DNA of 64,000 bases from assembly GCA_030704615.1 (NCBI GenBank), contig CM060734.1, forward strand, positions 6,138,001 to 6,202,000, read 5' to 3'. The notes under the pieces were generated by a model. It had not been told where the DNA came from and did no database searches. It saw nothing but the letters and a program-made list of their open reading frames with translations. Positions 4,231 through 31,920 of the stretch are shown one piece after another (positions within the stretch are counted from its first letter, which is position 1; each line of letters starts with the position of its first letter). This stretch comes from Takakia lepidozioides. Taxonomy: Eukaryota; Plantae; Bryophyta. Made by a program: the position numbers and the translations under genes.

Positions 4231-4860
4231 TGCGACCGCGAGCAGAGGTGGTCGCATTTTTATTTTTTTTCTTTATTATGTGCGACCACCAACAGGGGGG
4301 TGGTCGCAGATTTTTTTTTTTTAATCAACAGGGAGGTGGTCGCATAATTTTTCTTTTTTTTAATAGGCGCGACCACCAACAGAGGGGTGGTCGCAGAAAT
4401 TTTGTTAAAAACAAATAGTTGCGATGGTCGCATAATTTTCCGATTTTTTAATATCTACCAACAGTTAGTAGCTCAGTTGGTTAATTGCACTCAGTGCGAC
4501 CCGGACGATTTTGGGGTCAAATCTTACTACTTGATGGGTGTGGTATGGTTCGTGTGTGGTGCCCCATTCCTACGCTTCTTGGCACATAAATGAAAGAAGT
4601 TATTTTCTCCTCTCACTACTAAGGGGCCTGATTTGTGAGCTGTCGCTCCCAGGTTTTTCCCCAAAAAATAAAAATAAAAATAAAAATAAAAAATCTGCGA
4701 CCACCAGCAAGGGTAATTAGTAAATCAGTAAATAGGTGCAACTACCAGCAGGGGGGTGGTCGCAACATTTTTCTTTTATTTTAACAGTTGCGACGACCGC
4801 TACTGGTGGTCACACAATTGTTTTTTAAGAAAAAGGTGCGACCACCAGGAGGTTGGTCCC
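4231..4860. repeat. Array of GCGACCACC-N6/7-GGTGGTCGC palindromes with A/T-tract spacers (interrupted by a SINE)
   Basis: About 9 full or half copies are visible, e.g. GCGACCACCAACAGGGGGGTGGTCGC at ~4282. Confidence 0.85.
4463..4693 (+). mobile_element. tRNA-derived SINE-like element
   Basis: A-box-like TAGCTCAGTTGG at ~4469, degenerate B-box GGGGTCAAATC, and an (AAAAAT)n tail. The 3' body AAATGAAAG…GGGCCTGA is shared with 33335-33537. No clean TSD. Confidence 0.6.
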
Positions 4861-5166
4861 CTTGCACCTCTATGTATGTTTGGAGAGGCAGATGAAAAGC
4901 ACATGTATCGACTCCCCATGGATTTGTGAAGGGGAAGATGAATGTTGGGAGCTGCACCTGGCCTTTGTGGCTTTCGAAACCATAATAGGAAATCAACAAT
5001 GTAAAGGTAATGACGAAACACAAACGCACGCACAACCACCAAACCCTTTCTTGGGTACACATATTCCACCATTTTTGTTTGGGTACACGTATACATGTAC
5101 CCAAACTGAAACATGGATATCCATGGAAACATACTACACATCATGTGACAAAAGTTATAGCTGTAC

Positions 5167-8156
5167 CTAATTCCGTCTGGCACGACGATGATGGTATGAT
5201 CTCACGCCTAGTACAAAATCTTCGTCCCCACTCACTTCACCCCCGTTCCCATGATCAGTGCTAGAATCATGATCTCCATCTGTTCTTTCGATTCCAGAGG
5301 CAACTGGCCGTTGGACCTGTAGTCGTCCTCGGAGTACGTTCAGTTGTCTCTCTGGTCGATTTCCACTCCTATCATGAATACCACCTAGGGTATCAGGCCT
5401 GTTCACAGGTCGGTCACCAACAAAAGGTTGCACAATTCTCTGTCGTTTCTGGGCTTGTCCCGAATTTCGTGGTGGCCTTGGAGCAGGTCTCATATGAGAA
5501 AGACTACTCGCATGTACATCAGAGGGGCCGACATGAGAGGAAGGGGCATGAGATGGACCAGCGAGGGTCGAGGGAGCACGGTTCACATGCGGACGTCGTC
5601 GGGCCAGATGAAACGACAATGGCCGGTCATCGTCATCCGATGGTTCGACTTGCAGAAGTCCCGCAGCAGAAGAAGCATCTCCCAGGATCGGAGTAGCGAT
5701 GGAAGGAATTACATGAGGGGGAGAGAGACTAGATGGACCAGCATGGGATGGACCGGCTTGAGAAAGAGAAACATGAGATGGAGCGGGGATGAAGCACGGT
5801 TCACAGGGGCACGATGTCGGTGAAGGAATGACAACGGCCGGTTGTCATCATCCGACAATTCGACCTGCACATCTCCCGCAGTCCATGGAACTCGTGGTGG
5901 GGGAGAGTTGACCTCAACATCATTGTTGAGAATGTGCTCCACTGGGGGAAGGGGGTCTGCAATTGGGATGACATCATGTCGCAGTTCATCAACAACAAGA
6001 TCATCGAAGGATGGATGCATTGCAGCATCATCATCGTTAAATTCGTATGGGTCATGTGGAGGATTGCCCACATCATCGGACCCATCCCAACCGTCAGAGT
6101 CGGAGTCCCTCGCGGTGTCAGTGTCATCATTGCTGCTAGATTGGACCTCTGAGGCAGATTCTTCAGACAACAGATTCTTCTCGTACCATGCAGATGCGTC
6201 ACTTGCTCTCCTCTCTCGCAGTAGCCTACAATTCGTGTAGACATAAACCAATTTGTCAGCCCTGGCAGGATTCAACCTGTTGCGAATCTTGTTGTGAACA
6301 AACAAGTAACTGCTCCAGTTCCACTCACAGGACGAGGCAGAGCACACTTGAGCAAGAATACGCTTTGCAATAGGAGCTAACGTTCTTGCTCCAGCTCCAA
6401 TCAGATCCCACCATTCATGTGGCAACATGTTCATTGCTTTTGGATCCGGCATGTCATGGAAAGGATTCTGCCGATCCGAGAAGCACTGGTACTCGGATAA
6501 CGCTCGCTCTGCCATGTTCAAGGGCGCAAGTTGCTTGATGACCCATACAAGCCCGGCTTTGGCAACCACATCGTCTCTCAAATCCGTATTGTCCAGCAAG
6601 AATGGATTCAGCAAGGCCCCCGCATAATGTAAGTCTGTGCGAACCATCCGTTTGCGGTCGTAAAATGCATCCTCGATCCTTGCCGCCAAATCATCGTCCA
6701 TAGAAAATGGAGAACGCCTCAAGGATTGCACGTGCTTCTCAAGGTTTTCCAATATCAACCATGCTTTATCCATTATTGGTTATTTTCCATCAAACTCCCG
6801 CAAAGCAATCAACACCGGCTCCACCATGTACACAAAATTTGCACATTTCGCCCAGAAATCGTCAGAGAGAATGATTGCGCGGACCCTCTAACTTTTGCTC
6901 AAAGACTTGAACTTACGATAATCGCGTAAGGTGCCCACATATGCATCCCATTGAGGGTCAATGATCACCTGCTCCAGACCCGCCCTCACAGTCACCAGTC
7001 GATCCACCATCAAAAAGTTTGTGGCAAAGCGGGTTTCACCCGGGTTCCTAAGGCTGTATTTGGGTTCATGCTTTCTAAACAATGCCAGAGGGATGTGATG
7101 TGTAAGAATGAACGTCACAACCGACTTTGCCATTTTTACTAGTTGTTTCATCCATGATTTTTTTCCCCAATCCTCCAAAAGGAGATCAAAGATATGAGCA
7201 GCACACCCTTGGTAATATAGATGGGGATATCGTACCATCATTATATCGGCCATATTAACCATGTTAGATGCATTGTCCGTGCACACTTGGACAATTTTTA
7301 TCAGCTCCAATTTTATTGATGTAACTCGTTAACAACCCTGCTTAATAACGTGCATATTTTCTCTCCCCGCTTGTGTCAACAGATCCCAAAAATTGTTCCC
7401 CCGCAGGACAGACCAGCATGACATTGAACAGTGATCGATTAGTAACATAACTCCAACCGTCCGCACATATAGTGCTTCCATATTTCCGGAGAGAATCACC
7501 TGTATTTTCATTCACCTTTTGGGTGAGGTCAGACATAGCCTCTTCTAGCAATCATGTGCGGAGATTGCGATAACTCGGAGGTGTGTATGTGGACTTGGAA
7601 TCGGACGTGGCTTTGATAGCAGCCACAAACGCATGAAGCCTCAAGACATTGAACGGAATATTGGCCTCGTAGAAAAATTGGGCCCACTTCTTATCCAGAG
7701 TCCTCTTTTGCGACAAATTAAGCCTTCTTGCATTGATTGTTGCCTCAATGGTCTGGTCCGTACAAGTGCTAACGTACAATCGGGTGTTGCTCCTGACCCA
7801 CCGGCTTCTCCACGAACAGTAGACGCCTCGCAAAAATCCCCCTGGGTACAACTCTGAAGGACAGTTTGATTCGAACCTGGAGTGTTTGGCTCAGAAGCCG
7901 CGGCCACATCAAGAGACGGTGGGATATTGCCTCCACATTGGGCAAAGTGGGCTTTCACTCGCATGGAGTTTTTTGGGCACAAACAAACCTCTGTATTCTT
8001 CCCATCTCTGTAGCCGAGGTGATATAACATGCGATCTTTGCGACCCGCCAGCTTCAATGCACAAAGATTGCATTGAACACCGTCCTTTTTGTGCGGGTCT
8101 ATGGTGAACCAAGGGATCCACTCCTCCCTCATCCTCACACCCAAAACTCTAACCAC
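5167..8156 (-). pseudogene. hAT transposase, copy A (BED finger, DUF659-like DDE core, hATC dimerisation domain, acidic C-terminal extension)
   Basis: BED-like CNLC…HL…C; catalytic-type motifs TICADGWS, CTDNASNM, CAAH, ETRF and SASSCEWNWS…HNKIRNRL. Broken by stops and frameshifts. Confidence 0.92.
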
Positions 8157-8498
8157 AGACTTAAGGTTGAACGAAGAATACTAGTGTACTTGGTAGATTT
8201 GTCAAGAGCAATAGAAGTTAGAACAAAATGCGATGGCCCAATACTACGGCATCAATCCAAGTGGATCAATGCACCATGTAGTATTGTGTTTTTCGACAAT
8301 TTGCTACAGTGGCTCTGGTGGAAGCCACAACAGCAAAAAATCCGCACCCTCTTCTTGGGCTTACACTCTTGCTCAAGGAAAAGAGAACATTCACTCGCCA
8401 CAAAAGTGTTTGCCACAAAAGAAGTGAGGGGCATTGGGACCACTTTATATACCCTCCAGCCTCCAAGCCTCACACGCTCGACGAATCAGATCCAATGC

Positions 8499-8865
8499 TG
8501 CGACCGCTTCAGGTCGCACGAGGAAGTCGCATGTTATTTAAAAAAAAAACTGTTGCGACCACCCTCATGCTGGTGGTCGCACCTATTAAAAAAAATAAAA
8601 ATGTTGCGTCCACCCCCATGCTCGTGGTCACAGAGATTATTAAATTATTATTATTATTATTATTTGCTGCGACCACCCCCCCTGCTGGTGGTCGCACCTA
8701 TTAAACAAATAAAAATTTTCTACGACCACCACCATGCTGGTGGTCGCACCTATTAAGAAAAAGAAAAATGTTGCAACCACTCCCATGCTCGTGGACACAG
8801 AGAATATATATATTTTTTAAATTTTTATATTTTTTTGCGACCACCCCCCTGCTGGTGGTCGCACC
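8499..8865. repeat. Array of GCGACCACC-N-GGTGGTCGC palindromes upstream of hAT copy A
   Basis: About 7 copies at roughly 52-62 bp spacing with poly-A/T spacers. Confidence 0.85.
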
Positions 8866-10029
8866 TATTAAAAAAACTGAAAAATGCTGATGGAATCCGT
8901 CGCATTTGAGGGATGTTGTGACTATTTTTCATCCTGTGCCGATGAAAAATCGGGCAAATGCCCTAAGCTGTCTCTCCCGCCGTCAGTAGCACAGGCTGTG
9001 CTTCTGAGTGTTATGGTGTCTGCATTTTTGCTATTGTCCTGTTTGCTGCATGGTACCCGTGCTGAGTGACTTCCTGGGGATGCGCAATGGCGGTGTTTGG
9101 TCCCTCTTACATGCAGGAGACAAAGCTGTGAATGCTTTATTGTGTTCCCTCCTCTGGCCTTTAATTTTTGCAGCGGCACCTATGGTGGGAAGTCTCTCTC
9201 CCTCCCCTTCTTAACCTTGCAAGCTTGCTTGTATGCCTCATTGCTTCTTTGCTTTGTTGGAGGCGGCTTTCTGGTGGTAATGGCGCACAACTCTTTTCCG
9301 CAATCGCTCAAGGTGCTTTTGGTGACTAGGGTTCCTTCTGTTTTGTCTTCATCTCTTGCTTTTGAAGTTCTTGGTTGATATCGATGACAAGTGTGGGGAT
9401 CTGTGATTCACCTGGGGTTCCATAATCCTCACTAACCTGTTGGTTTTTGTGGGGGCTTGTGATGGGACCAGGTGAGGATCCCCACTTGCTTTGAATTTTC
9501 TTGAGCATGCAGATGTGGATGTGGGCAGATGAGCCCCTTGTCTTGTTGCGTCTTAATATGGCTGATGACTCCAGCCTCAATTTTGGCCGGTCTGCTCCTG
9601 GTTTGGCATGCTGCCACTTTTGTAAGGCCTGCGTTTTGCTACCATCTACGGGGCATCTCAGTTTCAAAGGCCTGTTTTCTGAAGCCCTGCATCCAACCTT
9701 TACCTTGTCTTTGGATCCCTGACAGCAGAGCCTGTGGATCACTAGGCTAGGTTACAATTTTGTGGCTCCAGAGGTTCTATGTTTTATGGGTAAGGCATCA
9801 GTGGCCTTTTGTTTTATGGGGCGAGGTGGCCTTGAATTTTATGGCAGCAGCCTAGTAAGGCACTGGCCTGCCCATTTTCAGGCCTTCATTTGGTAGATAA
9901 TGGATCATAGTAAAATGCTTTTGCAAACCCTAGCTTTGGCGTCTTGAGAAACGGTGGTGGTAAGCTTTAATGGACTCCAGCCAGTGATTTTGGCTTTGTC
10001 ATGACATCAGGCCCGTGACCTGCAATTTA

Positions 10030-10810
10030 AGGACCCAAGAGGCTTGCTTATCAGTGCATGTCTTGATAAATTTATTGGCCAAGAGGGCCAGGTCTCGGGT
10101 ACCCAAGATGCTTGCTTGAAGTGCATGTCTTGAATCTGTAAAATGGCAAGCTGGTCTCACATACCCAAGATGCCTTGCTTTGTGCATGTCTTGGTATAAT
10201 TATGACTGGTACGGTAAGCTGCTGCAATCTATTTTGTCATGCCCAAGGTGCTTGCTTGGATGCATGTTTTGAATCTGAAAAATTGCAGGCCTGTTCATAC
10301 ACCCAAGATACTTTGCGTGATGCATGTCCTGGTGAAATAAAGGTTGGTATTAAGGTAGGATGCAACAACATGGTTTGTCATGCCCAAGATGCTTGATTGA
10401 ATGCACATCTTGAATCTGTAAAATGGCAGGCTGGTGAGGCTGCAATATAGAATGAGGCTGCAATCTGTTTTGTCATGCCCAAGTGGGTTACTTGGTTGCA
10501 TGTCTCGAATCTGAAAAATTGCAAGCTGGTCCATTTAACCAAGGTGCCTTGCTAGATGCAAGTCCTGGTGTAATAAAAGGCTGATATGGTAGGAAGCAAC
10601 AACATGTTTTGTCATGCCCAAGATTTTTTGTTTGAAGACATGTCTTGAATATGTAATATGACAGGCTGATTCATATGCCCAAGATGATTTGCTTGGTGCA
10701 TGACCTAGGGTATTTATGATCTGTTTTGCCTTTTCCAAAACCCTTGCTCGGATGCATGTCTTGAATCTGTAAAAATTACAGGCTGGTTCGTATACCCATG
10801 GTGCCTCGCC
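10030..10810. repeat. Degenerate ~60-75-bp tandem repeat (CCCAAGATGCTTGCTTGGATGCATGTCTTGAATCTGTAAAATGGCAGGCTGGT)
   Basis: About 10 diverged copies of CCCAAG…TGCATGT…GAATCTG are visible. Confidence 0.75.
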
Positions 10811-11229
10811 TCTTGCGTGACTGCAACAACCAGTTATCATGTCCCTTACATGAACAAACCCCGCCCTCCCACCCTGTTTTATCATGAACGATTGGGTGAA
10901 GTCAATTGGGAAGCTATGACAAGAATGGAAGTGTTAGATGGTGCCCTGTTTTGGGCTGTTTATGTCTTTAATTGACAATTCTTTGCTGGATAATGTTTCC
11001 AATGGACGAGCTCATGGATGATTTTTTGTCTCTTTCATCTGAACCGGATGATAGGTGCAGCTGTTTATGGCCCTGATCTGATCTTAACTACCCCTAATTA
11101 TGGTTAATTACGGTGTGAAACCCTAACCCCTACCCTTAAAACTATTTTTTTAACCTAGCTACGTGTTATAGGGCTGTCTGGGACTTAGGCGGAATAGGGG
11201 TTTTGTGGGTACCCCTAATTTTTTGCGCA

Positions 11230-11445
11230 GTTGTGGTGCTTCAGCTGTGTGATCACAGCCCGACACAGGTCACAGTCACAGGGTGTGACAACTTGTGGTG
11301 CTTCATGACTGTGTGATCACAGCCCGTCACAGGTCACAGGTCACAGTCATAGGGTGTGACGACCTGTGACGCTTCGTGACTGTGCGGACATAGCTCGACA
11401 TAGGTCACAGTTCATCACGGGTCACAGGCGCTGTTACCACAGATG
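11230..11445. repeat. GTCACAG/TGTGAC-rich short-motif cluster, probably a DNA-transposon subterminal region
   Basis: Dense GTCACAG and TGTGAC motifs in both orientations, ending in GCGCTGTTACCACAG. Confidence 0.5.
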
Positions 11446-12736
11446 GGGAACATGAAGCGGGAACACCACCAGCGGGGACACAGTGTAGTTACAAGCTGAC
11501 TGGCGGTTAGAGGCGCGGTTAGACGATTATAGCTTGTAGGTGAAGAGCTAGCGGGAGGAGGGGAAAGGGATCACTTCTTGGACATCTGGCATCAGGGCGG
11601 AGAGCATGATCTTGGAGCACAGGGATGGAGATTACATATAGGAGGAGATACGACCCTGCTGTAGAGATGTACTGTAGGGCAGAATAGAGACACCATGGCT
11701 TCGGCCTGAAACATGATAGATATAAATCTGATTCTTATTTCATACTCACACTGTGTAGAGAGATCTGAGTGAAGCTGTGTGTCGCGCACCTCACTTCGGT
11801 AAGCTCCCCTTCAAGTCATAGTTACTCGCTTTGATGCGCGCGCCTGACTCCCAACCTGGCCTCCCGGGCCAACTTGGAGCTTCGGCTGCTCACCGGGACA
11901 TAACGGTCCCCCTTTGCTTCCCTCTAAACCCTCCACCTGTTTGGAACTAGGAGAATTCCCTTTGGTAGATGGCAGTCCGGAACAGCTCCCCACTCTTTGG
12001 TCGCTCTCCAGCTCGCTCGCTTACTCACTAGTTTTTGGTCACCAACGGGCTTGCACCGTTCTCGGGGTTACTACTCCCTATATATACTTCTGTAGCTGTC
12101 CGCGGGGGTTTCATAACCAGCCATGCCATTTTATGGCGAACCACCACGAAAACCCTCGACTCCCGGTGATGAGTCGCGGTGAGTCTTGGCCCACTCATCA
12201 CGGCCCCTATGGACCGTGATGAGTCCCAAGACTCCCCACGACTCCCACCACGAGGTCTCCGCCCCCATGGTGAGGCCTATGCCACCCCCACTAAGTCCCG
12301 CTAAGCTACCACCACCCCTTGTGGAGCCACCCCCCACCGCAACCCGGTGTGCGGGGCTCCACCTAGTGAGCGCCTCCGCCTCCTTGAGTGCCTTGGGCAC
12401 TCAAGGGTGCTTCAGCCCCCCATACCTATCGCTGCCGATGCCCCCACTACAGGGGCAGCCCCTCATGTGTCCTGACCCCCTGCTCTCAAGGCAAAGGGCC
12501 GCGACACACACCCCTACCAACAGGGAGTCGATGTCCTCATCGACTTGTCCATTTTGTAGAAACGAACATCCAAGTTGTGGCGTCCCACATCAAGGAGTTT
12601 GTTTCCGCACCATGGCGTCCCATGGCAAAGAACCAAACCCCACACTTGACTCTACTCTCCACTAGCTAGTTCGGCCGACTTCGTCCAAGTCCCGGCCAAG
12701 GGTGGAGCCTCTCCAGCTCCTCCCAGTGCACTCTTC

Positions 12737-13700
12737 TTGGCCTACTTCTTTCTGATAAGAGGGAAAAACAGTGTGAAATGTGTTGAAGAAGGTGCCTTCA
12801 TTAGCAGTGTCGTAATGGATCAATTGTGCCGCTGCTGGTGCGGCTTCCACTTGACCATGTACCCATGCAGGTTTCTTGTAGCTATCCTTCCACAGGAAAT
12901 CATAGGTAATCTAGAGCTTCAAATCCGGCCTTCTTGGATGAATCTGGACCCACACTCTATCCCTGCTCCTTCCGCTATCCATGCCTCTGCACAGATCATG
13001 CATGCATCCTTGCCTTGCTGCTGGCAGCTGACAATGACAGCCTAGAACTCTTCCAGTAAACACCCCAACCTACTTATCACACTATGTTGACTTGAGTCTG
13101 CTTCCAACAGGCATACACCTTTTTGCCTCGGTTGTCCCACCATTGACTGGGGTCATAAAAGTATTCATTCCATAGCTTCTCATCATCTCTATTACCTATT
13201 TTTGGACACTTTCGTGTTGTCACATTGGCAGTATCATGTCAAAGTCACTCCAAACTAAATTAAGTCAACCATCTAACTTGCAAAATTCAACATGAAAAAT
13301 TAGGGACGACTAGATGATAACAGGGAAAACAGGCTGAAATGTGTTGAAGAAGGTGCCTTCGTTAGTGGTGCCTGGTTTTATCAATTATGCTTATGCCGCC
13401 GCTGTTTCAGTTGACCATCTACCCATGCAGATCCACCCAACGAGCTAAAGTATAGAATTCAACATGCAAATTCAGGGACGAATCTGATGAGAGGGCAAAA
13501 CAGGCTGAAATAGGCTGAAGAAGAAGGTGCCCTCACCACATTGTCCTCGACCTTGTGTACGGACCACTTTCTCGAACACTCGCTTTGCATCCTCAAAGCA
13601 CCCACATTTGGCATACATGTCCACAAGGGTATTGTTCAAAATGACATCTGCCACAATTCCAGCTTTGACGATGCTACCATGGACCTCTTTGCCCTTCTTC
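12737..13700 (-). pseudogene. Scrambled fragments of an OSB-type PDF-motif gene joined to a PPR motif (cargo copy 1)
   Basis: Minus strand encodes GKEVHGSIVKAGIVADVILNNTLVDMYAKCG (PLS-PPR), DPSQWWDNRGKK and HPRRPDLKL…SLWKDSYKKPAWV. The DNA is homologous to 23230-25267 and 33680-37080. Confidence 0.75.
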
Positions 13701-15001
13701 TGATATCTGCACATGAAGCGAAGGGTCAACCACTCCCCCGTTGGATAATTCACTCAAGGCAAAGACAATATTAATACTCCTAGAAATGAAACAAATCATT
13801 TACCTATTTCTATTCACTTGCTGCCACTCAATTTCATGTGTATACAATGTGAGGATGGGGCTAGCCTGTGCACTTACAATAAAAGAGATTTTAGAAACAC
13901 TGCAGTTATTTCTTGCATCAATTTGAAGCCAAGTCAGCAGATGTAGAGACAAAGGTGATTACATTGGGCTTCCAACAAATTACTGTCAACTTTGATTGCA
14001 AATATGTGACATGTGTACCTGCAGACAAATAGGGCCCACCCTTGAAAAGGGGCAGTAGCCGCAAGGCGAAGTGGCTCTTAGTTACGCCAATTAGGCCGGA
14101 GTCTTCTTCTTCTACCTGCAGACAACGAACATAACGCTTGGTATAGCCCAAGTCATTAACTGTGGGGACCTCCAAGTTTCTTGCAAGTTGTCGGGTGCAC
14201 TTATTACAAAACTGCATCTACAGGGCCTCATTCTATAAGTTAGATTGTATGTTCAAGCAAGCGTGTTTCTCTAGTCCCTCTTGTGCTCAGATGCCTTGTA
14301 GCCTGACTGAAAGTGGTGGTGTTACTGTAGGGATGATCGGTCACATCAAAGTACTAACCACTATGGTGATCAGGTCTACCAATCCTAAGTAAAGATCACA
14401 CCAATGCTTGTGCAGGAGCTATGACAATTCCATACTAGACTGTCAACACCTTGAAGGAAGATGTCGTGTAACCAAAAGGCCATAGCAGCTTATCAAGGCA
14501 AAGCATCACCGTTTATGGGGTGCCGTCACTAGCCATGTTTGGGCACTTATAGATGGCAATAGGTTTGCATTCTTGAAGTGAAAGGCTCGCCCCTCCATTC
14601 TGGGTTGCAGATGTTTGGTACTTCTGTGCAATTGCTGCCAACTGTGTCACCTACCCACCGCCAAAACGCAAAAATGTATGAAGGGAATCAACATCACAAA
14701 TTGTTGTTTGCCAACAATGAAATAACATCAATTTATCAGTCATGAGTGCTCCAATCTTGGTGATGGCGAGTGAGACAGTGCTGGCCTCCAAGTCCTGTTG
14801 TCATCATAAGCTAACCATCACAGTAGCATATGGGTGTTGTGACAAGTCCTATCTACATAATGAGAATGATAGATTCCTGTTTGAGAAAGAGCCAGTACCC
14901 GACATGAGTAACATATACATGCTAAAATGTGTCCCTAAGGTATTACAAATTTACTGACTGAGAATTTGAAGAAGCAGTACTGCATGGGCCAAACCTGAGA
15001 A

Positions 15002-16645
15002 CTAAGAATTGACTTCAAGCATCGCACTCCACGACACCACATCTCGTTCAGCCATAGTGTTGAACACTCCCTTTGCATCCTCGACGCACCCACATTTTGC
15101 AAACATGTCCACGAGGGTATTGTTCAGACTGACATTTGGTACAATTCCACCTCTGAAGATGTCACCATGTACCTCTTTCCCCTTCTGCCAGGGCAATGTT
15201 CATAATGACATTGGGTACAATTCCACATGTTTCATAATGACATTTATGGTACAATTCATAATGACATTCGGTACAATTCCAGCTTTGATGATATCCCCAT
15301 GTTTCCCCTTGTCCAGGGCTCGATGCACCCACATTTTGCATACATGTCCACCAGGGTATGGTTCAGAATGACATTTGGTACAATTCGAGGAGTTTGGGTT
15401 TTTCGTGAGCAGAGTTTCGTGAGCAGGTGAGCAGTGAGTAGAATAATATTCCTTTTTGAGAATATTTATGAAAAATATTCCTTTTGGAGATTCTGATTCA
15501 GGGATATTCTCACGAATATCCAAGAAATATTTTGCCGAACCTTTGCTGAGCGAATGCCAAGGAATATTCTATCAAAGAATATTCTTCCGAACCTATGCCG
15601 AACCAGTTCGGTCTACTACCAAACGTATGGCACTGTTCGGCGCCGAACAAGGCGGGCACCTACGTTTTCCTAAAAAATTAGTTTTTTTTTTCTAAAATTT
15701 TAGTGTATGAAATGGTGTTCGGCGCCGAACCTGCAATCTTTGAGGGGTCATATGCAAAAACAATTTAGTAAAAATCTCATTTGGAATCCAAAATGGGAAT
15801 ATTCCAATAACCGAACCTATCCCGAACTTATCCCGAAGCTCGGACGTGGTTCGGAAGTCTACTCACCGCTCACTGCTCACAGCTCAATGCTCGTGCTCAC
15901 TGCTCACGGAATTTCAGCCCCCCAATTCGAGCTCTGAAGATGTCGCCATGGACCTCTTTCCCCTTTTCCAGAGCTGCCAGGGCAGTGTTTATAATGACAT
16001 TTGGTACAATTCCAGCTTTGATGATATCCCCATGCACCTTTTTGCCCTTGTCCAGGGCTCCATGCACCCACATTTTGCATACATGTCCACCAGGGTATGG
16101 TTTAGAATGACATTTGGTACAATTCGAGCTCTGAAGATGTCGCCATGGACTTCTTTCCCCTTTTCTAGAGGTGCCAGGGCAATGTTCATAATGACATTTG
16201 GTACAATTCCAGCTTTGATGATACCCCATGCATGCACCTCTTTGCCCTTGTCCAAGGCTCGATGCACCCACATTTTGCATACATGTCCACCAGGGTATTG
16301 TTCAGAATGACATTTGGTACAATTCCAGCTCTGAAGATGTCGTCATGGACCTCTTTTCCATTTTCTAGAGCTGCCAGAGTAGTGTTCATAATGATATTTG
16401 GTACAATTCCAGCTTTGATGATATCCCCATGCACCTCTTTGCCCTTGTCCAAGGCTCGATGCACCCACATTTTGCATACATGTCCACCAGGGTATGGTTC
16501 AAACTTCAGAATGACATTTGGTACAATTCCAGCTCTGAAGATGTCGCCATGGACCTCTTTCCCCTTTTCCAGAGCTGCCAAGGCAATGTTCAGAATGACA
16601 TTTGGTACAATTCCAGCTTTGATGATATCCCCATGCACCTCTTCA
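15002..16645 (-). pseudogene. Tandemly amplified, frameshifted PLS-type PPR motif fragments
   Basis: About 9 copies of (ALEK)GKEVHGDI(I/F)(K/R)AGIVPNVI, several with LVDMYAKCG, and one DVVSWSAM motif. Confidence 0.9.
15390..15922. mobile_element. Mutator-like MITE with 9-bp TSD
   Basis: CAATTCGAG at 15381-15389 and 15923-15931. G-starting imperfect TIRs carry GTGAGCAG/CTGCTCAC motifs. The empty site TACAATTCGAGCTCTGAAG occurs in a sibling PPR repeat near 16120. Confidence 0.85.
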
Positions 16646-17885: not shown

Positions 17886-19194
17886 TGGGTGATTGCAAAC
17901 TAGAGTGGACCAAAAACGACGGATCATGAGTACATAAAGGAGGATGTGGCAAATCCTCAACCATCGGATTTGCTTCAACTGACAATCTTGACCGTCTATT
18001 ACTGACTGTTAAAGCCAATATTTTCAAATTGCGATAATATCAATTCACAAATTTTTTTTTGAGATTTGATCATACTCAACTGTGCATTGATGGTGAATGA
18101 ATGCGTCTAATGAAAACAATTTTGTTATTTCAAAAGAATTTAGTCATAAAGGACTTTACGAAAATAGCTATTTTTGAGTACATAAATTATTTTTAACTTC
18201 ATATTTTTGGATGATAGTTTTCATTCCAGATTCCCCATTCTTCAAAGCAAGTTTGAGATAGTCCATTTTCTTGACTTTTTGCTAGCTCCTATATTAAAAA
18301 AGTTTATAACGTATTTTTTTTATGGACTGTGGACTTTTTACCTCACAAGTCCTACAAGAACCGGAAAAAAAAAAACAAAAAAACAAAAAAACTTTGAACA
18401 ATCTAAATTGCAAGAGGTCCAAGATTTATGTGGGCGTCAATGTCTACATAAGTCGTCGCAACTCTTCAACTTAAATAAAATATTAAAACAATCCGACAAA
18501 AAATATATTTTTGGTTGTTCCGAATTAGGTAGAGCATATCTTTACTCTTGACATTTCTATGGACTGACGTTCTTTATCTCTGAGCAGGATTTTTCTTTAC
18601 AATGACCTCTTTCGAGTCGGGCACAAAATATATGCACAAACATGAATCCAATTTATCAACCAATATTAACGTATTTCCAATGAGAACATGTTTGACATTG
18701 TTCTCAGATATAAGGTCACTTTCTAACATCACACCACTCTGCGCTCACGACCACTAAACGTGACGCCTAGTCTCACGCTTAGTGGTCAATCATGAGCCTT
18801 AGCTCACATGCTCATGGTGTAGCTTTGTTGCATTATTTAGAAATTAAAACTACCAAAAGACAATGAGTCTACATCATTTCATTTCCATTTATGGATGAAC
18901 CGACCATTCGATGTCTTCACCACTCAATAATATTTTCTTTCTCATTTCATCATACTATTTGTGAAGTTTGCATGGGTGTCGCTTCAAACCGAAGCCAGTT
19001 TTCGGCTTATAATCTTTCTTAAGAGGTTAAAAGCCGTAAATCTCATAGGGTTCACAAAGAAGACCCTCAAAACATCTATTAGGCTCCATACAATCACATT
19101 TTTGGCATGCTTGGGTGTACAATTTATTTTAGCTCATTGGACTTTTTATTGTTTCTCTATTCATAAAATACAGAATGAATGGAAAAACAAGTTT

Positions 19195-19345
19195 GCGACC
19201 GCTTGAATTCGGAGATCTCATGTATTTTTCTTTTTAGTGCGACCACTGGGAATTCGGCGGTCGCATGTGTTGTTTTTAAAACAATTAGTGCGATTGCCAG
19301 AATTCGGTGGTCGCTGCGGAGATCGCCAAAAGTCCGTGGTTGCAT
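19195..19345. repeat. Orphan degenerate GCGACCRC…GAATTC…GYGGTCGC palindromes
   Basis: 3-4 copies related to the hAT-unit arrays; no adjacent gene was recognised. Confidence 0.5.
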
Positions 19346-20554: not shown

Positions 20555-20764
20555 TTTTTAATAAATAAAAACAGGTAAATAACCACAACAACCCGTACGA
20601 AATTCTACGCTTCAAATAAGCCAGTCTTTTTAATAAATAAAAACAGGTAAATAACCACAACGACCTGTACGAAATTCTACGCTTCAAATAAGCCAGTCGT
20701 TTTAATAAATAAAAACAGGTAAATAACCACAATGACCCGTACAAAATTCTACGCTTCAAATAAG
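20555..20764. repeat. 72-bp tandem repeat x3
   Basis: TAATAAATAAAAACAGGTAAATAACCAC at 20559, 20631 and 20703. Confidence 0.9.
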
Positions 20765-22235: not shown

Positions 22236-22689
22236 ATCCACAACCAGGCTCTCAAGCACGATTTTTATGCAAACAAGAAGACAAAAATAACGCAAGAAGT
22301 CTACCAGAAGAGCTTGGAAATCTTCTACGTTCACCTCCAATATGGTAAACCACAAGAAGTACCACTAACTGGGCACGATACCCCACTACCACTAGGATGG
22401 CCCACTACCACGAAACAATTAGAATCCATAAATTGTTTCTTGGTCGCAGCAAGAAGACTATTTAAAGCTAAGGAAGGTTTAAATGACGACCTCGTTATTT
22501 GCGTCAGACATGATGCTGACGTGGCCTGCGTCAGGTCGGTTTTAGGTGTCGATAATGTAATTTTTGGGTGGGGGGTGAAAAGTGTGACACGTAAGTATCC
22601 ACGTCCCCTAGAAATTACACGCATGAAAAAAAAAATCAATTAGATTGAATTTTGATAATTTTAAAGGGTCGTCACGGTCGCCCGACAAT

Positions 22690-25267
22690 CACTAGAAGAG
22701 AAAATGGTTTTCTCCACGGTTTTTTCCACACTTTTTGGTGTGGATTCCACCCCAGTCCACACCTACCGTGGGTGTAAGAAATGACTAGTGCTTTCAGACA
22801 CCTGTGGAAAAAAGCCTCCACGGCCATGGCTCTGTGGAAAAAACCATAGAGGCGTATATCACAGGTGACATGGCCGATGGTATAGTTGACATGGTGGAGT
22901 GTGACACGCGACACGTGTCGGATTTCACACCTTTGACAAGTCACTATGCGACACGTGTTCGTTCCTGTGTAGTGGCACGCGTTTAATTTATTATTTTATT
23001 TTATTTTATTATTGAACAGGGGGATTGTTAATTATTAAATTATTAAATAATTTCAAATATTAAGTTGGAATATTAATGAATTTAATTTATTATTATTATT
23101 ATAGAGAACAAGGAACAGTGGCCTTGATGAGAACATTATTAAATTATGAATTATTAAAATTATGATTTTTTTAAAAAAAAATCGCTCAGATACCAAAACA
23201 CACCCCTTACAGGGAAGGAGAGTTTATCTTAGTGCCTATGCTGATTTGCATCTGCTACTCTCTGTAATCTAGCAGGCATTCACATTTTTGCCTCGGTTGT
23301 CAGAAAAGTATTCAGTCCACAGCTTCTCCTCACCTCTATTACCTGTTTCTGGATACTTTCATATTGTCGCTTTGGCACATGTCAAAGTCACTCCAAACTA
23401 TCAAAGGTTCACTCAACCAGCTAACTTGCAGAATTCAACATGAAAATTTAGGGCCGATTCTGATAAGAGAAAAAAAACAAGGTGAAATATGTTGATATGT
23501 TGTCTTGATTAGCAGTGCCTGATTTATCAATTGTGCCGCTGCTACCACGGCTTCCAGTTGTCCATCTACCCATGCAGGTTCATTGTAGCTATCCTTCCAC
23601 AGGGAATCATAGGTAATATGGAGCTTGAAATCCGACCCTCTTGGATGATCTGGACCCACACTCTATCCCTGCTCCTTCAGCTATCCATGCATCTGCACAA
23701 ATCATGCATACATCCTTGCATTACTGTTAGCAGCTGACAATGACAGCCTAGATTTGTTCCAGCAAACACCCAACTCAACTTATCACACTAATTCTTATTC
23801 TCGATTGAATCTGCTACTCTCTGTAATCTAATAGGCAGTTACCTTTTTGCCTCAGTTGTCCCCACCATTGACTGGGGTCAGAAAGTATTCATTCCACAGA
23901 TTCTCCTCCTCTCTGTTATCTATTTCTGGATACTTTCATATTGTCACTTTGGCAGTATCATGTCAAAGTCACTCCAAACTATTAAAGATTCATTCAACAG
24001 CTAACTTGGAGAATTCAACATGACCACACCGTTAGTGTCAGCTGCCAGCAGCAAGGCAAGGATGTATGCATGATTTGTGCACAGGCAATGATAGCTGAAG
24101 GACCAGGCATAGAGTGTGGGTCCAGATTCATCCAAGAGGGTCGAATTCCAAACACAAGATTACTTCTGATTCCCTGTGGATCAATACCTACAAGAAACCT
24201 GCAGGGGTAGATGGTCAACTGGAAACAGCAACAGCAGCAGCACAATGGATAGAACCAAACACCGCTAACGAATGCACCTTCTTCAACACATTTTAGCTTG
24301 TTTTCCCTATTATCAGAGTTGTCCCTAATTTTTATGTTCAATTCTGTAAGTTAGCTCGTTGGTGGATCCATGGTGGTTTTGGAGTGATTTTGACATGTTA
24401 CCGCCAAGTGGCAACAGGAAAGTATCAAAAAATAGATAACAGAGATGAGGAGAAGCTCTGGAATGAACACATTTCCGACCCCAGTCAATGGTGGAACAAT
24501 CGAGGCAAAAAAGTGAATGCCTCTTGGAAGCAACCGCAAGTCAGCATAGGAACTAGTATGATAAGTATGGTTGGGATGTTTGCTGAAGAGTTCTAGGCTA
24601 TCATTGTCAGCTGCTAGCAGCAAGGCAAGGATGTATGCATGATTTGTGCAGTTCTTCCAGAAAACACCCCAACCCTACTTATCACACTAGTTCCAAATCT
24701 GAAATGCATCTGATTTTCTCTGTAATCCAACAGACATTCACCTCTTTGGGGTCGGAAAGTGTTCACCCCAAAGCTTCTCCTCATCTCCGTTATATGTTTT
24801 TGGATACTTCCTTGCTGCCACACTGGCAGTACCTTGCCGAAGTCACTCCAAACCGCCACAGATCTACCCAACGAGCTAAATTCAACTTGTCAGAGTCACT
24901 CCAAACCACCACAAATCCACCCAACGAGCTAACTTACAAAATTCAATATGCATCTCAGAACCGAGTCTGATGAGAGGGCAAAACATGTAGAAATAGGTTG
25001 AAGAAGAAGGTGCCCTCACCACATTGTCATTGATCTTGTGTCATGACCCATTGAGGATTTGACCAATCACCAACCCAAAAGGACCTCTTCTGTGCATATT
25101 GCTCGTGTCTGTAGTCAGGTAATGTCGGTTTGGTTTGTGCGAACCACCACGGTGCAGCTGAGCACTAGACAGAGATTAAAACACAGCCTACTAAGACCAA
25201 GCTGACTCTCCCAAGAACCTTGTAAACATCAAGAAGAATACCAAATCATGGTAGTAATAGGAGCCAA
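22690..25267 (-). mobile_element. One end of a Pack-CACTA element, truncated or interrupted at ~25268
   Basis: Begins CACTAGAAGAGAAAATGG and has ACACGTGT subterminal motifs. 22940-25267 is inverted-homologous, with rearrangement, to 34178-37340 of the complete CACTA. The other TIR was not found. Confidence 0.65.
23230..25267 (-). pseudogene. OSB-type PDF-motif exon fragments (cargo copy 2; some segments inverted)
   Basis: HPRGSDFKLHITYDSLWKDSYNEPAWVDGQL (minus); HPRGSNSKHKITSDSLWINTYKKP and KLWNEHISDPSQWWNNRGKKVN (plus). Confidence 0.75.
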
Positions 25268-25466
25268 GCCCGGTTATCAGCGTCACGTCCGTCCGTCCGT
25301 CAGCGTCACGTCACGTCAGACCTGACGCTGACGGGACCTCCGTCACGTCAGGTTCGGGGAATATTCTGGTAAAAATAGTACCAGGTAAAATACTGCCACT
25401 TAAACAGCCACGTCGCCGACACGGTGGCGGTGGCAAATACATTTTGAAAATTAACAAAATGAACAC

Positions 25467-26675
25467 GACCGCCCATTCGCTTTGTTTTTCGAAATTAAAA
25501 AAGAAATAGCGACCGCCGTATTGGCGGTCGCTTCAAATTTTTCTTTTTTAAAGTAAAATTGGCGGTCGCTTCAAATGTTTTTTTTTTAAAAGCAAGATTG
25601 GCGGTCGCTTCAAATGTTTTTTTTTTAAAAGCAAGATTGGCGGTCGCACTAACGGTCGCCTTATTTTTCGAATCAAAAAAACAAATAGCGACCGTTATAT
25701 TGGCAATCGCTTCAATTTTTTTATTTAAAAAACAAGATTGACGAGCGTATTGGCGGTCGCCTAATTTTTTTATAAAAACAAGCGACTGCCGTATTGGCGG
25801 TCGCACGGTGGCAAATACATTTTTGAAAATTAACAAAATGAACGCGACCGCCAATTATGGTGGTCGCTTCATTTTTCGAAATTAAAAAAGAAATAGCGAC
25901 CGCCATATTGGCGGTTGCTTCAATTTTGTTTTTAAAAGCAAGATTGGCGGTCGCACTGGCGGTTGCTTTATTTTTCGAAATAGAAAAAGAAATGACGACC
26001 GCCATATTGGCGGTCGCTTCAATTTTTATTTTTTTAAAGCAGGATTGGCGGTAGCACTGGCTGGTCGCTTTATTTTTCGAACTAAAAAAAGAAATAGCGA
26101 CCGCTATCTTGGCGGTCGCTTCAATTTATTTCTAAAAAAAACAAGACTGGAGGTCGCATTGGCGGTCGCCTAATTTAAAAAAGAAAACAAGCGACTGTCG
26201 TATTGGCGGTCGCACAGTTTTGTAAATATGTACAGAACAAGCGACCGCCATATGGCGGTCGGATAATTTCAAAAATATATAAAAAAACAGCGACCGCCAT
26301 TGGGCGGTCGCTTAATTTAAAAAATATATAGAAAAATAAACGACTGCAATAAAATATAAATATTAAAAGCGACCGCCTTACTAGCGATCGCGTTTTTTTT
26401 AAAATATTAAAAATAAAAGCGACCACCATATTGGCGGTCGTTTTATTTTAAATATATTAACAAATGAAGCGACTGCCATACCGACAGTTGCATTATATTT
26501 TGAAATAAAAAACAATAGCGACCGCCATACGGGCGGTCGCTTAAATTTAAAAATATACAAAATAGAAGTGACCGCAATATTGCACAACTGAAAGGAAATA
26601 AAAGCGACCGCATTAGTGGCGGTCGCTTGTTTTTCATTATAAAAAAAAATAGCGACCGTAGTATTAGCGGTCGCT
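25467..26675. repeat. Array of GCGACCGCC-N4/6-GGCGGTCGC palindromes upstream of hAT copy B
   Basis: More than 20 full or half copies separated by A/T tracts. Confidence 0.92.
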
Positions 26676-27055
26676 TAATTTCAAAATTACAACAAATATG
26701 GTTGTACAGCCTTTTTCGGGTGGATGCTATTGGTTCGTCATTTATTCATTTAACTTTCATTTCACTTTCATCCCTCTTGGATCATATATAAGGGAGGAGG
26801 GTCATCAAGCTCCTCACTTCTTTTGGCGTAAACACTTGAGGTTGTTTTGGATGTTCTCTTCCATTGAACGAGAGTGTAGCCCAAGAGGAGGGTGCGCACC
26901 TTTTGCCGTTGTGGCTTCCACCAAAGCCACTTCAGCAGATTGTGTATAAGCTCAACACTACAACCCACATCGATCCACTTGGGTTGCTGACAGGTGTAGA
27001 AATGTTGGGCTATCGCATTGCACTCTACATTCACAACACGTTTATTTATAGGTGA

Positions 27056-30000
27056 TTGTTTTTTGTTGTTTGCATCGCTAGGTCCCAGGGGAGTGGATAT
27101 TGGGTGAAGATGAGGGAGGAATTGAGCCCTTGGTATACGGCAATCTCGAACATTGTCAGTGCCATTGGTAGTGTTGAGTGCTACCTATGTGGATTAAAGC
27201 TTTCTTATCGTAAAGATCGGTTGCTCGCTCACCTCGGCTATAAAGGTGTGAAGAGCGCTGGGGTGGGTTTATGCCCCAAAGCATCTATGTGGGTAAAAAG
27301 CCACTTTGGCCAATGTGGAGGCAATATTCCAATGTCTTTGGATCTGGACATGACCTCTGAGCAGAACACTCTATCTTCCCGTCAGGATGCCCCGATTAGT
27401 ACCCAGGGCGACTCTTGTGAGGCTTCGGGTGTCTTTGGACAAGTGGGTTGTGTCGGAGCAACACCTGCTTCAACACCTCTTTGTACCCTTACATTTCAAC
27501 GAAATAGAGGATTACGGCAGCAATCCATGCAAGAAGGTCTTAACTTGTCTGCGAAAAGACAGTTGGATAAAAAATGGGCGCAGTTTTTCTTCGAGGCCAA
27601 CATATCCTTTAATGTGGCAAGGCTTCCAGCATTTGTTTCTGCCGTTAGAGCAACCTCGGAGTCCAGATCCACGTACGTGCATCTGACTTATCACAATCTC
27701 CGCACATGATTGTTAGAAGACGTCATGACCGAGCTTACCCAAAAGGTCAACGATAGAACGGACGATTGCATCAAAAAATATAGAAGCACTATATGTGCCG
27801 ATGGTTGGAGTTCTGTCACAAACAGACCATTGTTCAATGTCATGCTCATATGTCCAGCTGGGGAACAATTCTTGGGATCGGTCGACACTAGCGGCAAGAA
27901 GAAAGATGGACGTTATCAATGCCAACTATTGACGGATCATCGAACAAGTCGGAAGTGATAGAATCGTGCAAATATGCACAGACAATGCCGCTAACATGAG
28001 AAACACTGCAGACATGTTGTTGGCACGTTATCCACATATGTACTATCAAGGTTATGTTGTTCATATCCTTGACCTCCTTTTGGAAGATTGGGGAAAAAAA
28101 ACAGTGCGTAAAACAACTTGTCAAGCGAGCGAAGACTATTGTGTCGTTCATCCGCACACACCACATCCCTTTGGCAATATATAGGAGGCACGAACCCAAA
28201 TACAGCCTCCGCAATCCAGACGAAACTCGTTTTGCCACTAACTTCTTGATGGTGGATCGGTTGGTGACGGTGAAGAGTAGTCTGGAGCACACCATCATCG
28301 ATCCTCAATGGGATGCGTACACACGGACATTGCGGGACTCCAGAAAAGCCAAGTCATTGGGCAAAAGTCGAAAAGTTCGAAATAACATTCGCAGCGATGA
28401 TTTAGGGAAGAAATATGAAAATTTTGTTTATATGGTTGAGCCGGTGTTAATCGTCTTGCGGGAGTTTGATGGAAAACAACCAGTATTGGGCAAGACATGG
28501 TTACTAATGCAAAATCTTGAGAAGCACGTCCAATCGTTGAGGCATCCTCCTTTCTCCTTGGAACCTGAACTTGCGGACAGTGCCGAGGATGCATTTTACG
28601 ACCGTCGTTCGATGGTTCGAACGGACTTGCATTATGCGGGGGCTTTGCTCAATCCATTCTTACTCGACAATACCATGTTCCGAGACGATGTTGATGCCAA
28701 GGCCGGCCTCGTGCGAGTGCGAGTGCGACTGGCTCCGCCGAACCATGTAGAGAGAGCTATATCCGAATACCAATGCTTCTCAGATCGCCGCGACCCTTTT
28801 GAGGACATGCCGGATCCAAAAGAGCTCAATATGCTGCCACATGAATGGTGGGATCTGATTGGAGCTGGAGCAAGAACATTGGCTCCCATTGCGAAGCGTA
28901 TTTTTGCTCAAGTGTGCTCTGCCTCATCTTGCGAACGCAATTGGAGCAGTTACTCATTTGTTCACAACAAGATTCGCAACAGGTTGAATCCCGCGAGGGC
29001 TGACAAATTAGTGTATGTGTATACCAATTGCCGACTGAGAAGACAGCGGATGATGTTGCAGCATGGTATGAGAGGAATTTGCATTCCGAAGACTTTGCTT
29101 CTGAGGCTGATTCGATTAGTGACGATATTGAGCCTCAGAGAGAATCATCTTAGAGAGAATCATCTGCCTCCGATAGTGAAGATGGATCCGATGATGCTCC
29201 CGAAAATGCGTATGACCCGTTTACATTCACAGAGGAGGATGTTTATATCCAGCCGATCTTTGGTGACCTTCTTGAAGAAATGCGTATTGTTGATGAAGGT
29301 GAAGCTGCAATTGTGTCATCCCCAGAACATGGTCCTCAAAATGAAGTTGGGGTCGACCATCGCCCCCCACTACACGCTGAAGTCACCGGTAGCTTAGGGG
29401 TGATGTACTGTCAGGACCGATCGACGTACGCAACCCTGTTCATACAAACGATGGTGTCGAACCCATTGTACGGTCGACGGGACGGGATCATGCCTCACCG
29501 ATACGACCAGCTCCACCACAATGCCAAAACCGATCCAGCTCCCCATCAACACAACGGACATTAAGGAGCAACAGGGTTGATCTGTTTTCCACATGCATGC
29601 ATCATTCTGCTGCATTGGACCGGACGGAAGTTGAAGCCTCGGATGATGACAACCTGCTACTACAATTCCACCTTAACCAACGTGTTGCGCAGCAGACCCG
29701 TGGTTCCTCACATTCCGGACCATCTAATGTCGATCCATCTCGGGCAGTCCCCCCTCCAGTATCTCCTTCGAGACCACCTTCGATTGCGTCCCAAGTCCAT
29801 AAACGACAGAGAACAATCCAACCTTTTGTAGGCGATCGGCCCACAAACAGGCCACATACCGTAGATGGTATTCAAGACCGGAGTGGGAGTCGACCTCAGA
29901 GAGAACTAAATATCGTTCGAGGTCGTTTGCAGATTCAAAGGCCTGGACATATGAGGTCGGATAGGGAGGACGATTCCAGCACTGATCATGGCAACGGTGG

Positions 30001-30091
30001 TGAAGTCGAGGGTGACCCGGATTTTCAATCCATCGGAGCATTAGGATTAGGGTCTTCTTCGTCCCGCCGTCGAAGCAGTAGAAGGAATTGA
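27056..30091 (+). pseudogene. hAT transposase, copy B
   Basis: CYLC…HL…C BED-like finger, TICADGWS, CTDNAANM, ETRF and SASSCERNWSSYSFVHNKIRNRL. Stops and frameshifts are present. The C-terminal QPFVGDRP…DSSTDHGNGGEV block is shared with copy A. Confidence 0.92.
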
Positions 30092-30365
30092 CGCAAAACA
30101 GCTGTAGGCATGCATCAGCACTTTTTAGTGGACATGTTTATATTTCTGTACTAAAGTAATACCAATGTGATCATTGTCACTATGAATATTTGTATTGCTG
30201 TTGTGTATGTGCTGGAAAATAAAAGATGTTGCCCAAGTGTATACCAGCCAAAATGTCGGCCAAATGCCCCGTCACTTGCTCATGTTTGTGTTCGGTGATT
30301 TGCTTGTGGAATGGAGAACAATTGTGCCATGCTTCCAACTGTGCATTTATTTTTATTTAAATGGA

Positions 30366-31920
30366 GCGACCGCCAAGGTGGCGGTCGCTTCTAAGAGGTC
30401 TACCCTCCGCGTGGAGCGAGGAATGAGGCGGGGGGGGGGGCATATAAGCCCCCACTCATTCTCCCCTCACTTTCATTATTGGCAGTTTTTGTTTTTACAA
30501 AATGCAACGACCGCCATTTCTGGCGGTCGCTGTAATGGTTTATTTTTAAGATGCAGCGACCGCCATTACTTGCGGTCGCTTTATTTTATTTTATTTTTGG
30601 AAATGGGGCAACCGCCATTACTGGCGGTCGCATTTATTTTAATTATTTTGGAAATGAAGCGACCGCCATTAGCTTTAACAAACGCTCGCGTTCTTCTAGC
30701 ACCGCTGCTACTGCCGGTTCCTCAACGTCTTGGGCGGCCCAACTTGCGGTCGCTTTTATTTTAATTATTTTGGAAATGAAGCAACCGCCTATGTTGGCGG
30801 TCGCTTATTTATTTTAAAGTTTTTGAAAATGAAGCGACCGCCTATGTTGGCGGTCGCTTATTTTTTTTAAATGTTTTGAAAATGATGCGACCGCCTATGC
30901 TGGCGGTCGCTTATTTTTTTTAAATTTTTAAAAAATGAAGCGACCGCCAGCATGGGCGGTCGGTTTTTTTGTTTTAAAGTTTTTGAAAATGAAGCGACCG
31001 CCTATGTTGGCGGTCGCTTATTTATTTTAAAGTTTTTGAAAATAAAGGGACCGCCTATGTTGGCGGTCGCTTATTTATTTTAAAGTTTTTGAAAATGAAG
31101 GGACCGCCTATGTTGGCGGTCGCTTATTTATTTTAAATGTTTTGAAAATGAAGCGACCGCCTATGCTGGCGGTCGCTTATTTATTTTAAATTGTTTTTAA
31201 ATGAAGCGACCGCCTATGTTGGCGGTCGCTTATTTATTTTAAATGTTTTGAAAATGAACCGACCGCCAATGCTGGCGGTCGCTTACTTATTTTTAAAAAA
31301 ATTAAATGAAGCGACCGCCTATGTTGGCGGTCGCTTATTTATTTTAAAGTTTTGGAAAATGAAGCGATCGCCTATGGTGGCGGTCGCTTATTTATTTTAA
31401 ATGTTTTGAAAATGAAGCGACCGCCTATGCCGGCGGTCGCTTATTTATTTTAAATGTTTTTTAAGGAAGCGACCGCCTATGTTGGCGGTCGGTTTTTTTG
31501 TTTTAAAGTTTTTTTTAAGGAAGCGACCGCCTATGTTGGCGGTTGCTTATTTATTTTAAAGTTTTTGAAAATGAAGCGACCGCCTATGTTCGCGGTCGTT
31601 TATTTATTTTAAATGTTTTGAAAATGAAGCGACCACCCATGCTGGCAGTCCCTTATTTATTTTTAATTGTTTTTAAATTAAGCGACCGCCTATGTTGACG
31701 GTCGCTTATTTTTTTTTAAGTTTTTGAAAATGAAGCGACCGCCTATGTTGGAGGTCGGTTTTTTTTTTTTTTTTTTTTTTTTCCGGAAAATGGGGCGACC
31801 GCCAATTCTGGCGGTCGCAATTTTTATTTATTTATTCGGAAAATGGAGCGACCGTCAGTTCTGGCGGTCGCTTATTTTTTTATTTCCGGAAAATCGAACG
31901 TCCGCCAAGTTGGCGGTCGC
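30366..31920. repeat. ~53-bp-period array of GCGACCGCCTATGTTGGCGGTCGC palindromes
   Basis: Roughly 25-28 copies; starts at 30781, 30834, 30887, 30940, 30994 and onward. Confidence 0.95.

Follow-up and report, generated by a model that had tools for sequence, protein, structure and literature searches.

The 64,000-nucleotide stretch of Takakia lepidozioides DNA analyzed here (contig CM060734.1 of assembly GCA_030704615.1, positions 6,138,001 to 6,202,000; hereafter the window) holds two inverted copies, A and B, of a multi-gene hAT transposon, in which tandem arrays of short palindromes, spelled differently in the two copies, precede the promoters of the transposase gene and of a second, accessory gene. 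The favored interpretation, given a probability of about 0.5 on the strength of the sequences and of analogy with characterized transposons, is that the element encodes a sequence-specific DNA-binding domain for which these arrays provide clustered binding sites. It starts from direct observations, namely the anatomy of the arrays, the conservation and enrichment of their half-site among distant relatives, the coarse tracking of the transposase tree by that half-site, and a lower variability of the palindrome arms.

In the window the word GCGACCACC is found at 20 places, where chance predicts 0.35, and GCGACCGCC at 58, where it predicts 0.11, with almost every site falling in four tandem arrays, two per copy, comprised of palindromes with 10-bp arms and loops of 4 to 9 nt. 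The copy A array beside the transposase promoter (8499-8885) is built from units of TG-CGACCACC, a loop of 8-9 nt, and GGTGGTCG-CA, separated by AT-rich spacers, and the internal array of the same copy, upstream of the accessory gene (4231-4846), includes an edge unit (4233-4254) with one G/C-type arm. The copy B array beside the transposase promoter (25440-26680) has units of AG-CGACCGCC, a loop of 4-6 nt, and GGCGGTCG-CT, as well as right half-sites standing alone in runs; the internal array of this copy (30366-31920) contains about 25 palindromes, 22 of which follow a strict 53-bp period. Outside these four arrays the motif is found at three sites in the window, one inside the copy A accessory gene and two in an isolated mini-array of three units (19190-19320), where the loop is GGAATTC, the arms are mixed and decayed, and no gene of the family lies nearby. 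The copy A internal array is itself split by an insert of ∼240 bp (4455-4692), which looks like a short interspersed element from the tRNA-like box A and box B at its start and the (AAAAAT)5 at its end; ARAGORN and Rfam scans of this insert were negative and no second copy of it was found within the window.

A conserved core-promoter module, the same at both genes and in both copies, follows 50-110 bp downstream of the end of every array and consists of a G-run, [C/A]TATAAG, about 20 nt of intervening sequence, and CCTCACTT. In copy A, the module reads TATATAAAG followed by CCTCACTT at the transposase gene (8422-8450, minus strand) and CTTATAAGG followed by CCCTCACTT at the accessory gene (4137-4171, minus strand). 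The corresponding copy B modules are CATATATAAGG followed by CCTCACTT (26783-26819, plus strand) for the transposase and GATATAAGCC followed by CCTCACTT (31972-32007, plus strand) for the accessory gene, and in this copy the module is duplicated, with the two versions (30366-30472 and 31899-32007) flanking the 1.4-kb internal array. An initial annotation of the stretch had placed the arrays immediately upstream of each TATA box, and this placement holds for all four arrays at the distances given above, the protein-kinase gene of copy B being without an array.

The closest public transposases are 39-57% identical in their core to those of copies A and B and lie on ENA and JGI contigs with a bryophyte-like composition, the named matches being a moss and a liverwort. 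Arrays of the GCGACC palindrome are present in none of the public relatives examined, and a metagenome pattern scan for the palindrome yielded, among the matches listed, nothing but isolated chance hairpins from bacterial contigs of high GC content (median GC 0.67). What the relatives share is the half-site: in all eleven related loci with enough non-coding flank the core CGWCCNCC is clustered or enriched, for the most part a short way upstream of the genes for the transposase and the accessory protein, and the 8-mer CG[A/T]CC[G/A]CC is enriched 6-20 times in five of the eight relatives scanned for it, within flanking non-coding DNA that is otherwise unalignable. The half-sites of the relatives occur in mixed orientation with GC-rich spacers. 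Their consensus is GC-CGTCC-G-CC in L002, L127, L128, L130, L143, L144, and L145, with A in place of the variable G at about 7-43% of sites, CGTCC-G-AT and CGTCC-G-CC in L001, and TC-CGACC-C-CC, in the form of direct 12-bp repeats, in L006, as compared with TG-CGACC-A-CC in copy A and AG-CGACC-G-CC in copy B. The core was also seen as direct repeats of 12-14 bp, with up to about 50 sites per locus, at 1611-1965, 4899-5165, and 9349-9885 of L001 and at 8955-9228 and 15519-15915 of L006, those of L006 having the same orientation relative to each downstream gene. The possibility that the arrays are chance minisatellites is not borne out, as the core is enriched and mostly gene-proximal at this degree of transposase divergence. 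By these sequence comparisons the arrays are a conserved feature of the hAT lineage.

A maximum-likelihood tree of the transposase core (loci L001-L137, with broken genes read with X at their stops) placed copies A and B as sisters (bootstrap 100) and L006 and L129 as sisters (bootstrap 94), the four together forming clade X (bootstrap 100). Every locus with CGTCC lies outside clade X, and the split between CGACC and CGTCC is the deepest well-supported branch of the tree (bootstrap 100). The variable position 6 of the core is G, A, or C by lineage and, from the sequences, G is the ancestral state, with the A of copy A and the C of L006 being derived. Thus, of the earlier expectation that motif variants should track element phylogeny, the coarse part stands, in that W follows the transposase tree, whereas the G/A position is mixed inside the arrays of the relatives, and the frequent A minority there means that position 6 may simply be tolerant or prone to decay. 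The catalogue is a deep one, of 13 sampled loci, and the close-range comparison comprises the two copies and one remnant of the lineage.

Constraint on the half-site is also visible within a single array. Among the 22 regular units of the copy B internal array the arms vary by 10.2% overall and the left arm, where anchoring introduces no bias, by 13.3%, as compared with 22.9% for the loop and 20.7% for the spacer, a figure pushed up somewhat by indels in its AT-rich sequence. The lower variability of the left arm has a p value of about 0.007. The arms carry CpGs and would be expected to mutate faster, yet they vary less.

The two copies differ consistently in how the arms are spelled. Counted as exact 8-mers on both strands, with positions 8798-8841 left out, all 15 arms of copy A are CGACCACC and none is CGACCGCC, whereas 64 of the 69 arms of copy B are CGACCGCC, three are CGACCACC, and two have T. 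A second difference lies at the base just outside GCGACC, which is symmetric in both arms and is T in 18/19 cases in copy A and A in 58/71 in copy B. The resulting forms are T-GCGACC-A-CC...GG-T-GGTCGC-A for copy A and A-GCGACC-G-CC...GG-C-GGTCGC-T for copy B, both of which fold as hairpins of -12 to -14 kcal/mol. Exceptions to the rule are the edge unit at 4233-4254, a few A-type arms in copy B, and the mixed arms of the mini-array at 19190-19320. The copy-specific spellings that the initial annotation had reported for two arrays per copy are confirmed by these counts.

The inner CpG of the palindrome is altered in all copy A arms, always symmetrically, and the outer CpG is intact in nearly all of them. 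Separate CpG deamination of each copy A unit was considered as the origin of this form and ruled out by the intact outer CpG, by the constant and symmetric direction of the change, and by the nature of the flank change, which is a transversion, so that deamination alone cannot account for the pattern that separates the two copies. Since the inner CpG is changed throughout and the outer one kept, the A form would have been fixed before decay set in, which points to one founder unit having spread while the copy A subfamily was alive. The loops bear on how it spread. Read in element orientation, the loop is CCyCTGTT in the copy A internal array and TATGTT in the copy B internal array, and the loop of the copy A transposase-side array is the inverted form AGCATGgt, and AGCATG recurs in a single unit of the internal array of copy B. 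As the loops are homologous between arrays, whole units, and not the arms alone, have undergone copying or homogenization, both within arrays and between them, and selection acting specifically on the arms is not needed. The change had earlier been described as compensatory and as homogenized across arrays; symmetry and homogenization are indeed seen, but, with homologous loops and some mixed arms, turnover of whole units could itself be the source of the seemingly compensatory pattern. The symmetry of the founder could have arisen through selection for paired sites, through selection for the stem, or through template switching within quasi-palindromes.

These features are shared ground with a purely neutral history, the best placed of the rival explanations and nonetheless an improbable one, in which hairpin-prone minisatellites were homogenized by slippage, unequal exchange, and arm-to-arm template switching, with the spellings as by-products and no reader at all. 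Template switching is well established as a mutational route by which quasi-palindromes are corrected, the hairpins of the units are strong, and the homologous loops show that whole units were copied. In addition, arms are mixed in the edge unit and in the mini-array, one of the two changes is of the type CpG to CpA/TpG, and in the relatives A is common as a minority base at the position of that change. Such a history does not readily explain why the 8-mer core has been retained and is enriched close to genes where the transposases are only 39-57% identical and the flanks unalignable, or why in L006 the core persists as direct repeats without palindromic form. Moreover, the arms vary less than the spacers despite their CpGs, and the short distance between each array and a conserved promoter is fixed.

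Nucleic-acid structure is given less weight again. Here DNA cruciforms or hairpins, or hairpins in read-through RNA, would act as terminators, insulators, sources of small RNA, or aids to transposition, and symmetric changes would preserve the stem. Both changed positions do keep Watson-Crick pairing in a stem of 10-11 bp, variable loops would be harmless to a hairpin, and the internal arrays occupy the interval from the transposase gene's 3' end to the promoter that follows. A stem is not what is amplified in the solo half-sites of copy B or in the direct repeats of the same core in L006, however, nor is it apparent in the half-sites of the relatives, with their mixed orientation and GC-rich spacers, and an Rfam scan of a single stretch gave no family. 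The least probable alternative is that the arrays multimerize sites for a host factor of the GC-box type, which would drive the three promoters of the element and tolerate the two spellings as degeneracy, a view that accommodates the promoter-proximal position of the arrays, the G/A mixtures in the relatives, and a putative resemblance of some variants to plant AP2/ERF-type sites such as GCCGAC, but that is at odds with the way CGACC versus CGTCC and the G/A/C of position 6 follow the transposase tree, as a co-inherited binder would predict, and with the near restriction of the motif to the arrays within the window.

For the favored interpretation, binding of the arrays by a protein encoded by the element, the best candidate binder would be a conserved Cys/His zinc module at the N terminus of the hAT transposase. 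This module has the invariant spacing C-x2-C-x13-H-x16-C-x13-C and is predicted to form a β-hairpin and a helix. Copies A and B differ at many of its residues, so a change in specificity is possible. The recognized unit would be a half-site of 8-10 bp with the core CGWCCNCC, and in the present lineage two half-sites facing each other as a palindrome would let two domains bind side by side, each unit having presumably been amplified through tandem duplication. Bound to an array 50-110 bp upstream of a TATA promoter, the protein would function in activation, anti-silencing, or autoregulation. The two spellings (T..A in copy A and A..G in copy B) would be subfamily states, fixed by whole-unit turnover while the elements were alive. 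The second candidate is the accessory protein, the N-terminal domain of which has a basic stretch and a Cys/His-rich core, matches no Pfam family, and gave nothing in a protein atlas. A model of this domain of medium confidence (predicted local distance difference test score 68, about 80 in the core) matched no solved fold, the best Z score being 3.4 and Foldseek E values being above 1. The initial annotation had named a BED finger of the transposase or the N-domain of the RING protein as the reader; the Cys/His module could not be assigned to BED by Pfam, and the N-domain matches no known fold. The same annotation had called for a dimeric binder, which is not required given the amplified solo half-sites of copy B, the direct repeats of L006, and the variable loops. 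Protein binding, the identity of the binder, and the effect of binding are all inferred here from sequence.

Several results weigh against this interpretation. The N-terminal module of the transposase has no Pfam BED match, and its matches to known structures are not significant, with C2H2 fingers reached at E values of 0.16-0.2 in PDB sequence searches and Foldseek E values above 0.8. A rigid dimer would not tolerate loops ranging from 4 to 9 nt. The window scan found no palindrome array upstream of the copy B kinase gene. No matching second end, terminal inverted repeat (TIR), or 8-bp duplication of the target site (TSD) was found for the copies in the window, copy A running off its edge. 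Finally, both copies are dead, and nothing in them demonstrates a present function.

The arrays next to the transposase genes lie where homology between copies A and B stops, and such an array would double as the usual subterminal transposase-binding region of a hAT element. As the ends themselves were not found, the term subterminal derives solely from the point at which A/B homology stops. An Ac-like CAGGATGAAA is present ∼40 bp outside the copy A array, a pattern that is not enriched in number (38 matches against 34 expected). At 8918-8950, about 40 bp outside the same array, an Ac-like CAGGATGAAAAAT (minus strand) and GATGAAAAAT (plus strand) are oriented toward each other as a small inverted repeat, which could be an element terminus or a product of chance. 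ACGT-rich short hairpins of the CGTCACGTCA type are clustered at 25280-25345, just outside the copy B transposase-side array, and a similar TGACGTCACGACG repeat is found in L006 (8756-8792), ∼170 bp outside the corresponding array. These hairpin repeats may be part of the element end.

The gene content of the window was mapped by tblastn with open reading frames from the public relatives. By the transposase domain test the element is a member of the hAT superfamily: the transposase, with an RNase-H-like core (DUF659 region) and a C-terminal hAT dimerization domain, scores above threshold for PF04937 and PF05699 in copies A and B and in the relatives. Gene 2, the accessory gene, is present in both copies and combines an N-domain marked by WPxDRHD with a RING finger, the latter exceeding Pfam thresholds in the relatives. 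In copy A, which is cut by the start of the window, the transposase pseudogene (5709-8156, minus strand; DUF659 plus hAT dimerization domain) has six in-frame stops, and the accessory gene (1458-3802, minus strand) comprises a WPIDRHD N-domain (3386-3802) with one in-frame stop and a RING part (1458-2749). In copy B, the transposase pseudogene (27032-29397, plus strand) has one in-frame stop and two frameshifts, the N-domain exon of the accessory gene (32318-32710, plus strand; WPLDRHD) has one in-frame stop, and the RING-containing part, located by tblastn, lies at 37886-39147 (plus strand), set apart from the N-domain by an insertion of ∼5 kb (about 32800-37880). This insertion belongs to a repeat family that is also found at 12750-13700 and 23270-25270, with 75-92% identity and in both orientations. 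A protein-kinase homolog (42275-42943, minus strand) is convergent with the copy B RING gene. The transposase lesions, together with the stop in each accessory N-domain, leave both copies dead. They are also old, to judge from a DNA identity of 72.5% across 2.3 kb and a protein identity of 61% for the transposase core; further, shorter homologous blocks continue past the internal arrays.

Both copies have the same 120-bp satellite downstream of their RING gene (378-1138 and 39852-40637), which in copy B separates this gene from the convergent kinase gene, and from this shared place it seems to be part of the element. Elsewhere in the window, two direct copies of ∼2.3 kb (43724-45997 and 54285-56549) are 87-95% identical, lie 10.55 kb apart, and are unrelated to the hAT element. 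Other tandem arrays are found at 15923-16643 (200-bp unit, 3.6 copies, 91% match) and 61705-62313 (169-bp unit, 3.6 copies, 90% match), the second of which includes the palindrome CAACCTTGCG..CGCAAGGTTG.

A bolder version of the binding interpretation is rather unlikely, though it would be the most far-reaching. It holds that a bryophyte hAT lineage evolved, on its own, self-recognition similar to that of VANC or TnpA, in which the zinc module reads the arrays before all genes of the element, the copy A code shifted (core G to A and flank A to T, in both arms) together with its reader, and the subfamilies were thereby independently activated or protected. Proof that element-encoded readers of dense motif clusters mediate self-recognition is limited to Mutator-like and CACTA elements in Arabidopsis and maize. 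Were binding confirmed, the hAT superfamily and seed-free plants would come under the same principle, the two copies would supply naturally paired site variants that share a conserved half-site, useful for studying the co-evolution of site and reader, and a function would be given to the promoter architecture of a three-gene hAT lineage of which, like its palindrome arrays, no description was found in the literature searched. As it stands, the arrays represent a well-documented sequence pattern with a plausible but hypothetical mechanism.

Of the known systems, Ac/Ds and Hermes are members of the same superfamily as the present element and likewise have many copies of a short motif near the transposase gene at the edge of the element. 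Within the terminal 200 bp, the Ac transposase shows cooperative binding to AAACGG hexamers (PMC3260210). In Hermes, two BED domains sit on a quasi-palindromic pair of subterminal repeats, cooperatively and without protein-protein contact (PMC10368747), an arrangement that fits recognition of half-sites with palindromic pairing as proposed here. Unlike those of Ac and Hermes, the sites in the window form regular tandem arrays of up to 1.5 kb with AT-rich spacers, each abutting a TATA promoter, and one array is internal, before the second gene; the element also differs in that neither TIR nor TSD was found and that Pfam detects no BED domain.

The parallel drawn in the initial annotation was with the VANC proteins of Arabidopsis VANDAL elements, and its account of them, with subfamily-specific motifs amplified in tandem arrays, is correct. 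VANC21 binds YAGTATTAY, which is amplified in tandem repeats and exists in C-type and T-type subfamily variants, and both binding and hypomethylation have been demonstrated (PMC5735166). As in VANDAL elements, short motifs are dense in the element's own non-coding DNA, are tandemly amplified in units that diverge together, and differ between subfamilies by single bases, so the dense tandem repeats with subfamily variants that characterize VANC motifs are found here as well. VANC motifs, however, are arrayed in one orientation and are not palindromes, and VANDAL elements are Mutator-like, as compared with the hAT element of the window. Pfam scans of the accessory open reading frames and their relatives gave RING fingers only and no VANC-like protein, and with the superfamily also different, membership of the VANC family fails.

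TnpA and the AtMu1 transposase bind dense, family-specific clusters of motifs and activate their cognate copies (preprint 10.64898/2026.08.24.746577). In these systems, as in the present one, family-specific motif clusters lie at termini and promoters and diversify together with the lineages; across the 13 loci CGWCCNCC is shared, W follows the tree, and position 6 varies by lineage. The TnpA and AtMu1 clusters are read by a protein that the element encodes, and the transposase itself can be the regulator. They belong to CACTA (Spm) and Mutator elements of a flowering plant and come with experimental proof, whereas the element described here is a bryophyte-type hAT with three genes and palindromic units, known from sequence alone. 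Taken together, these comparisons suggest that the present arrays resemble, in layout and conservation, the clusters of Ac and Hermes, of VANC, and of TnpA and AtMu1.

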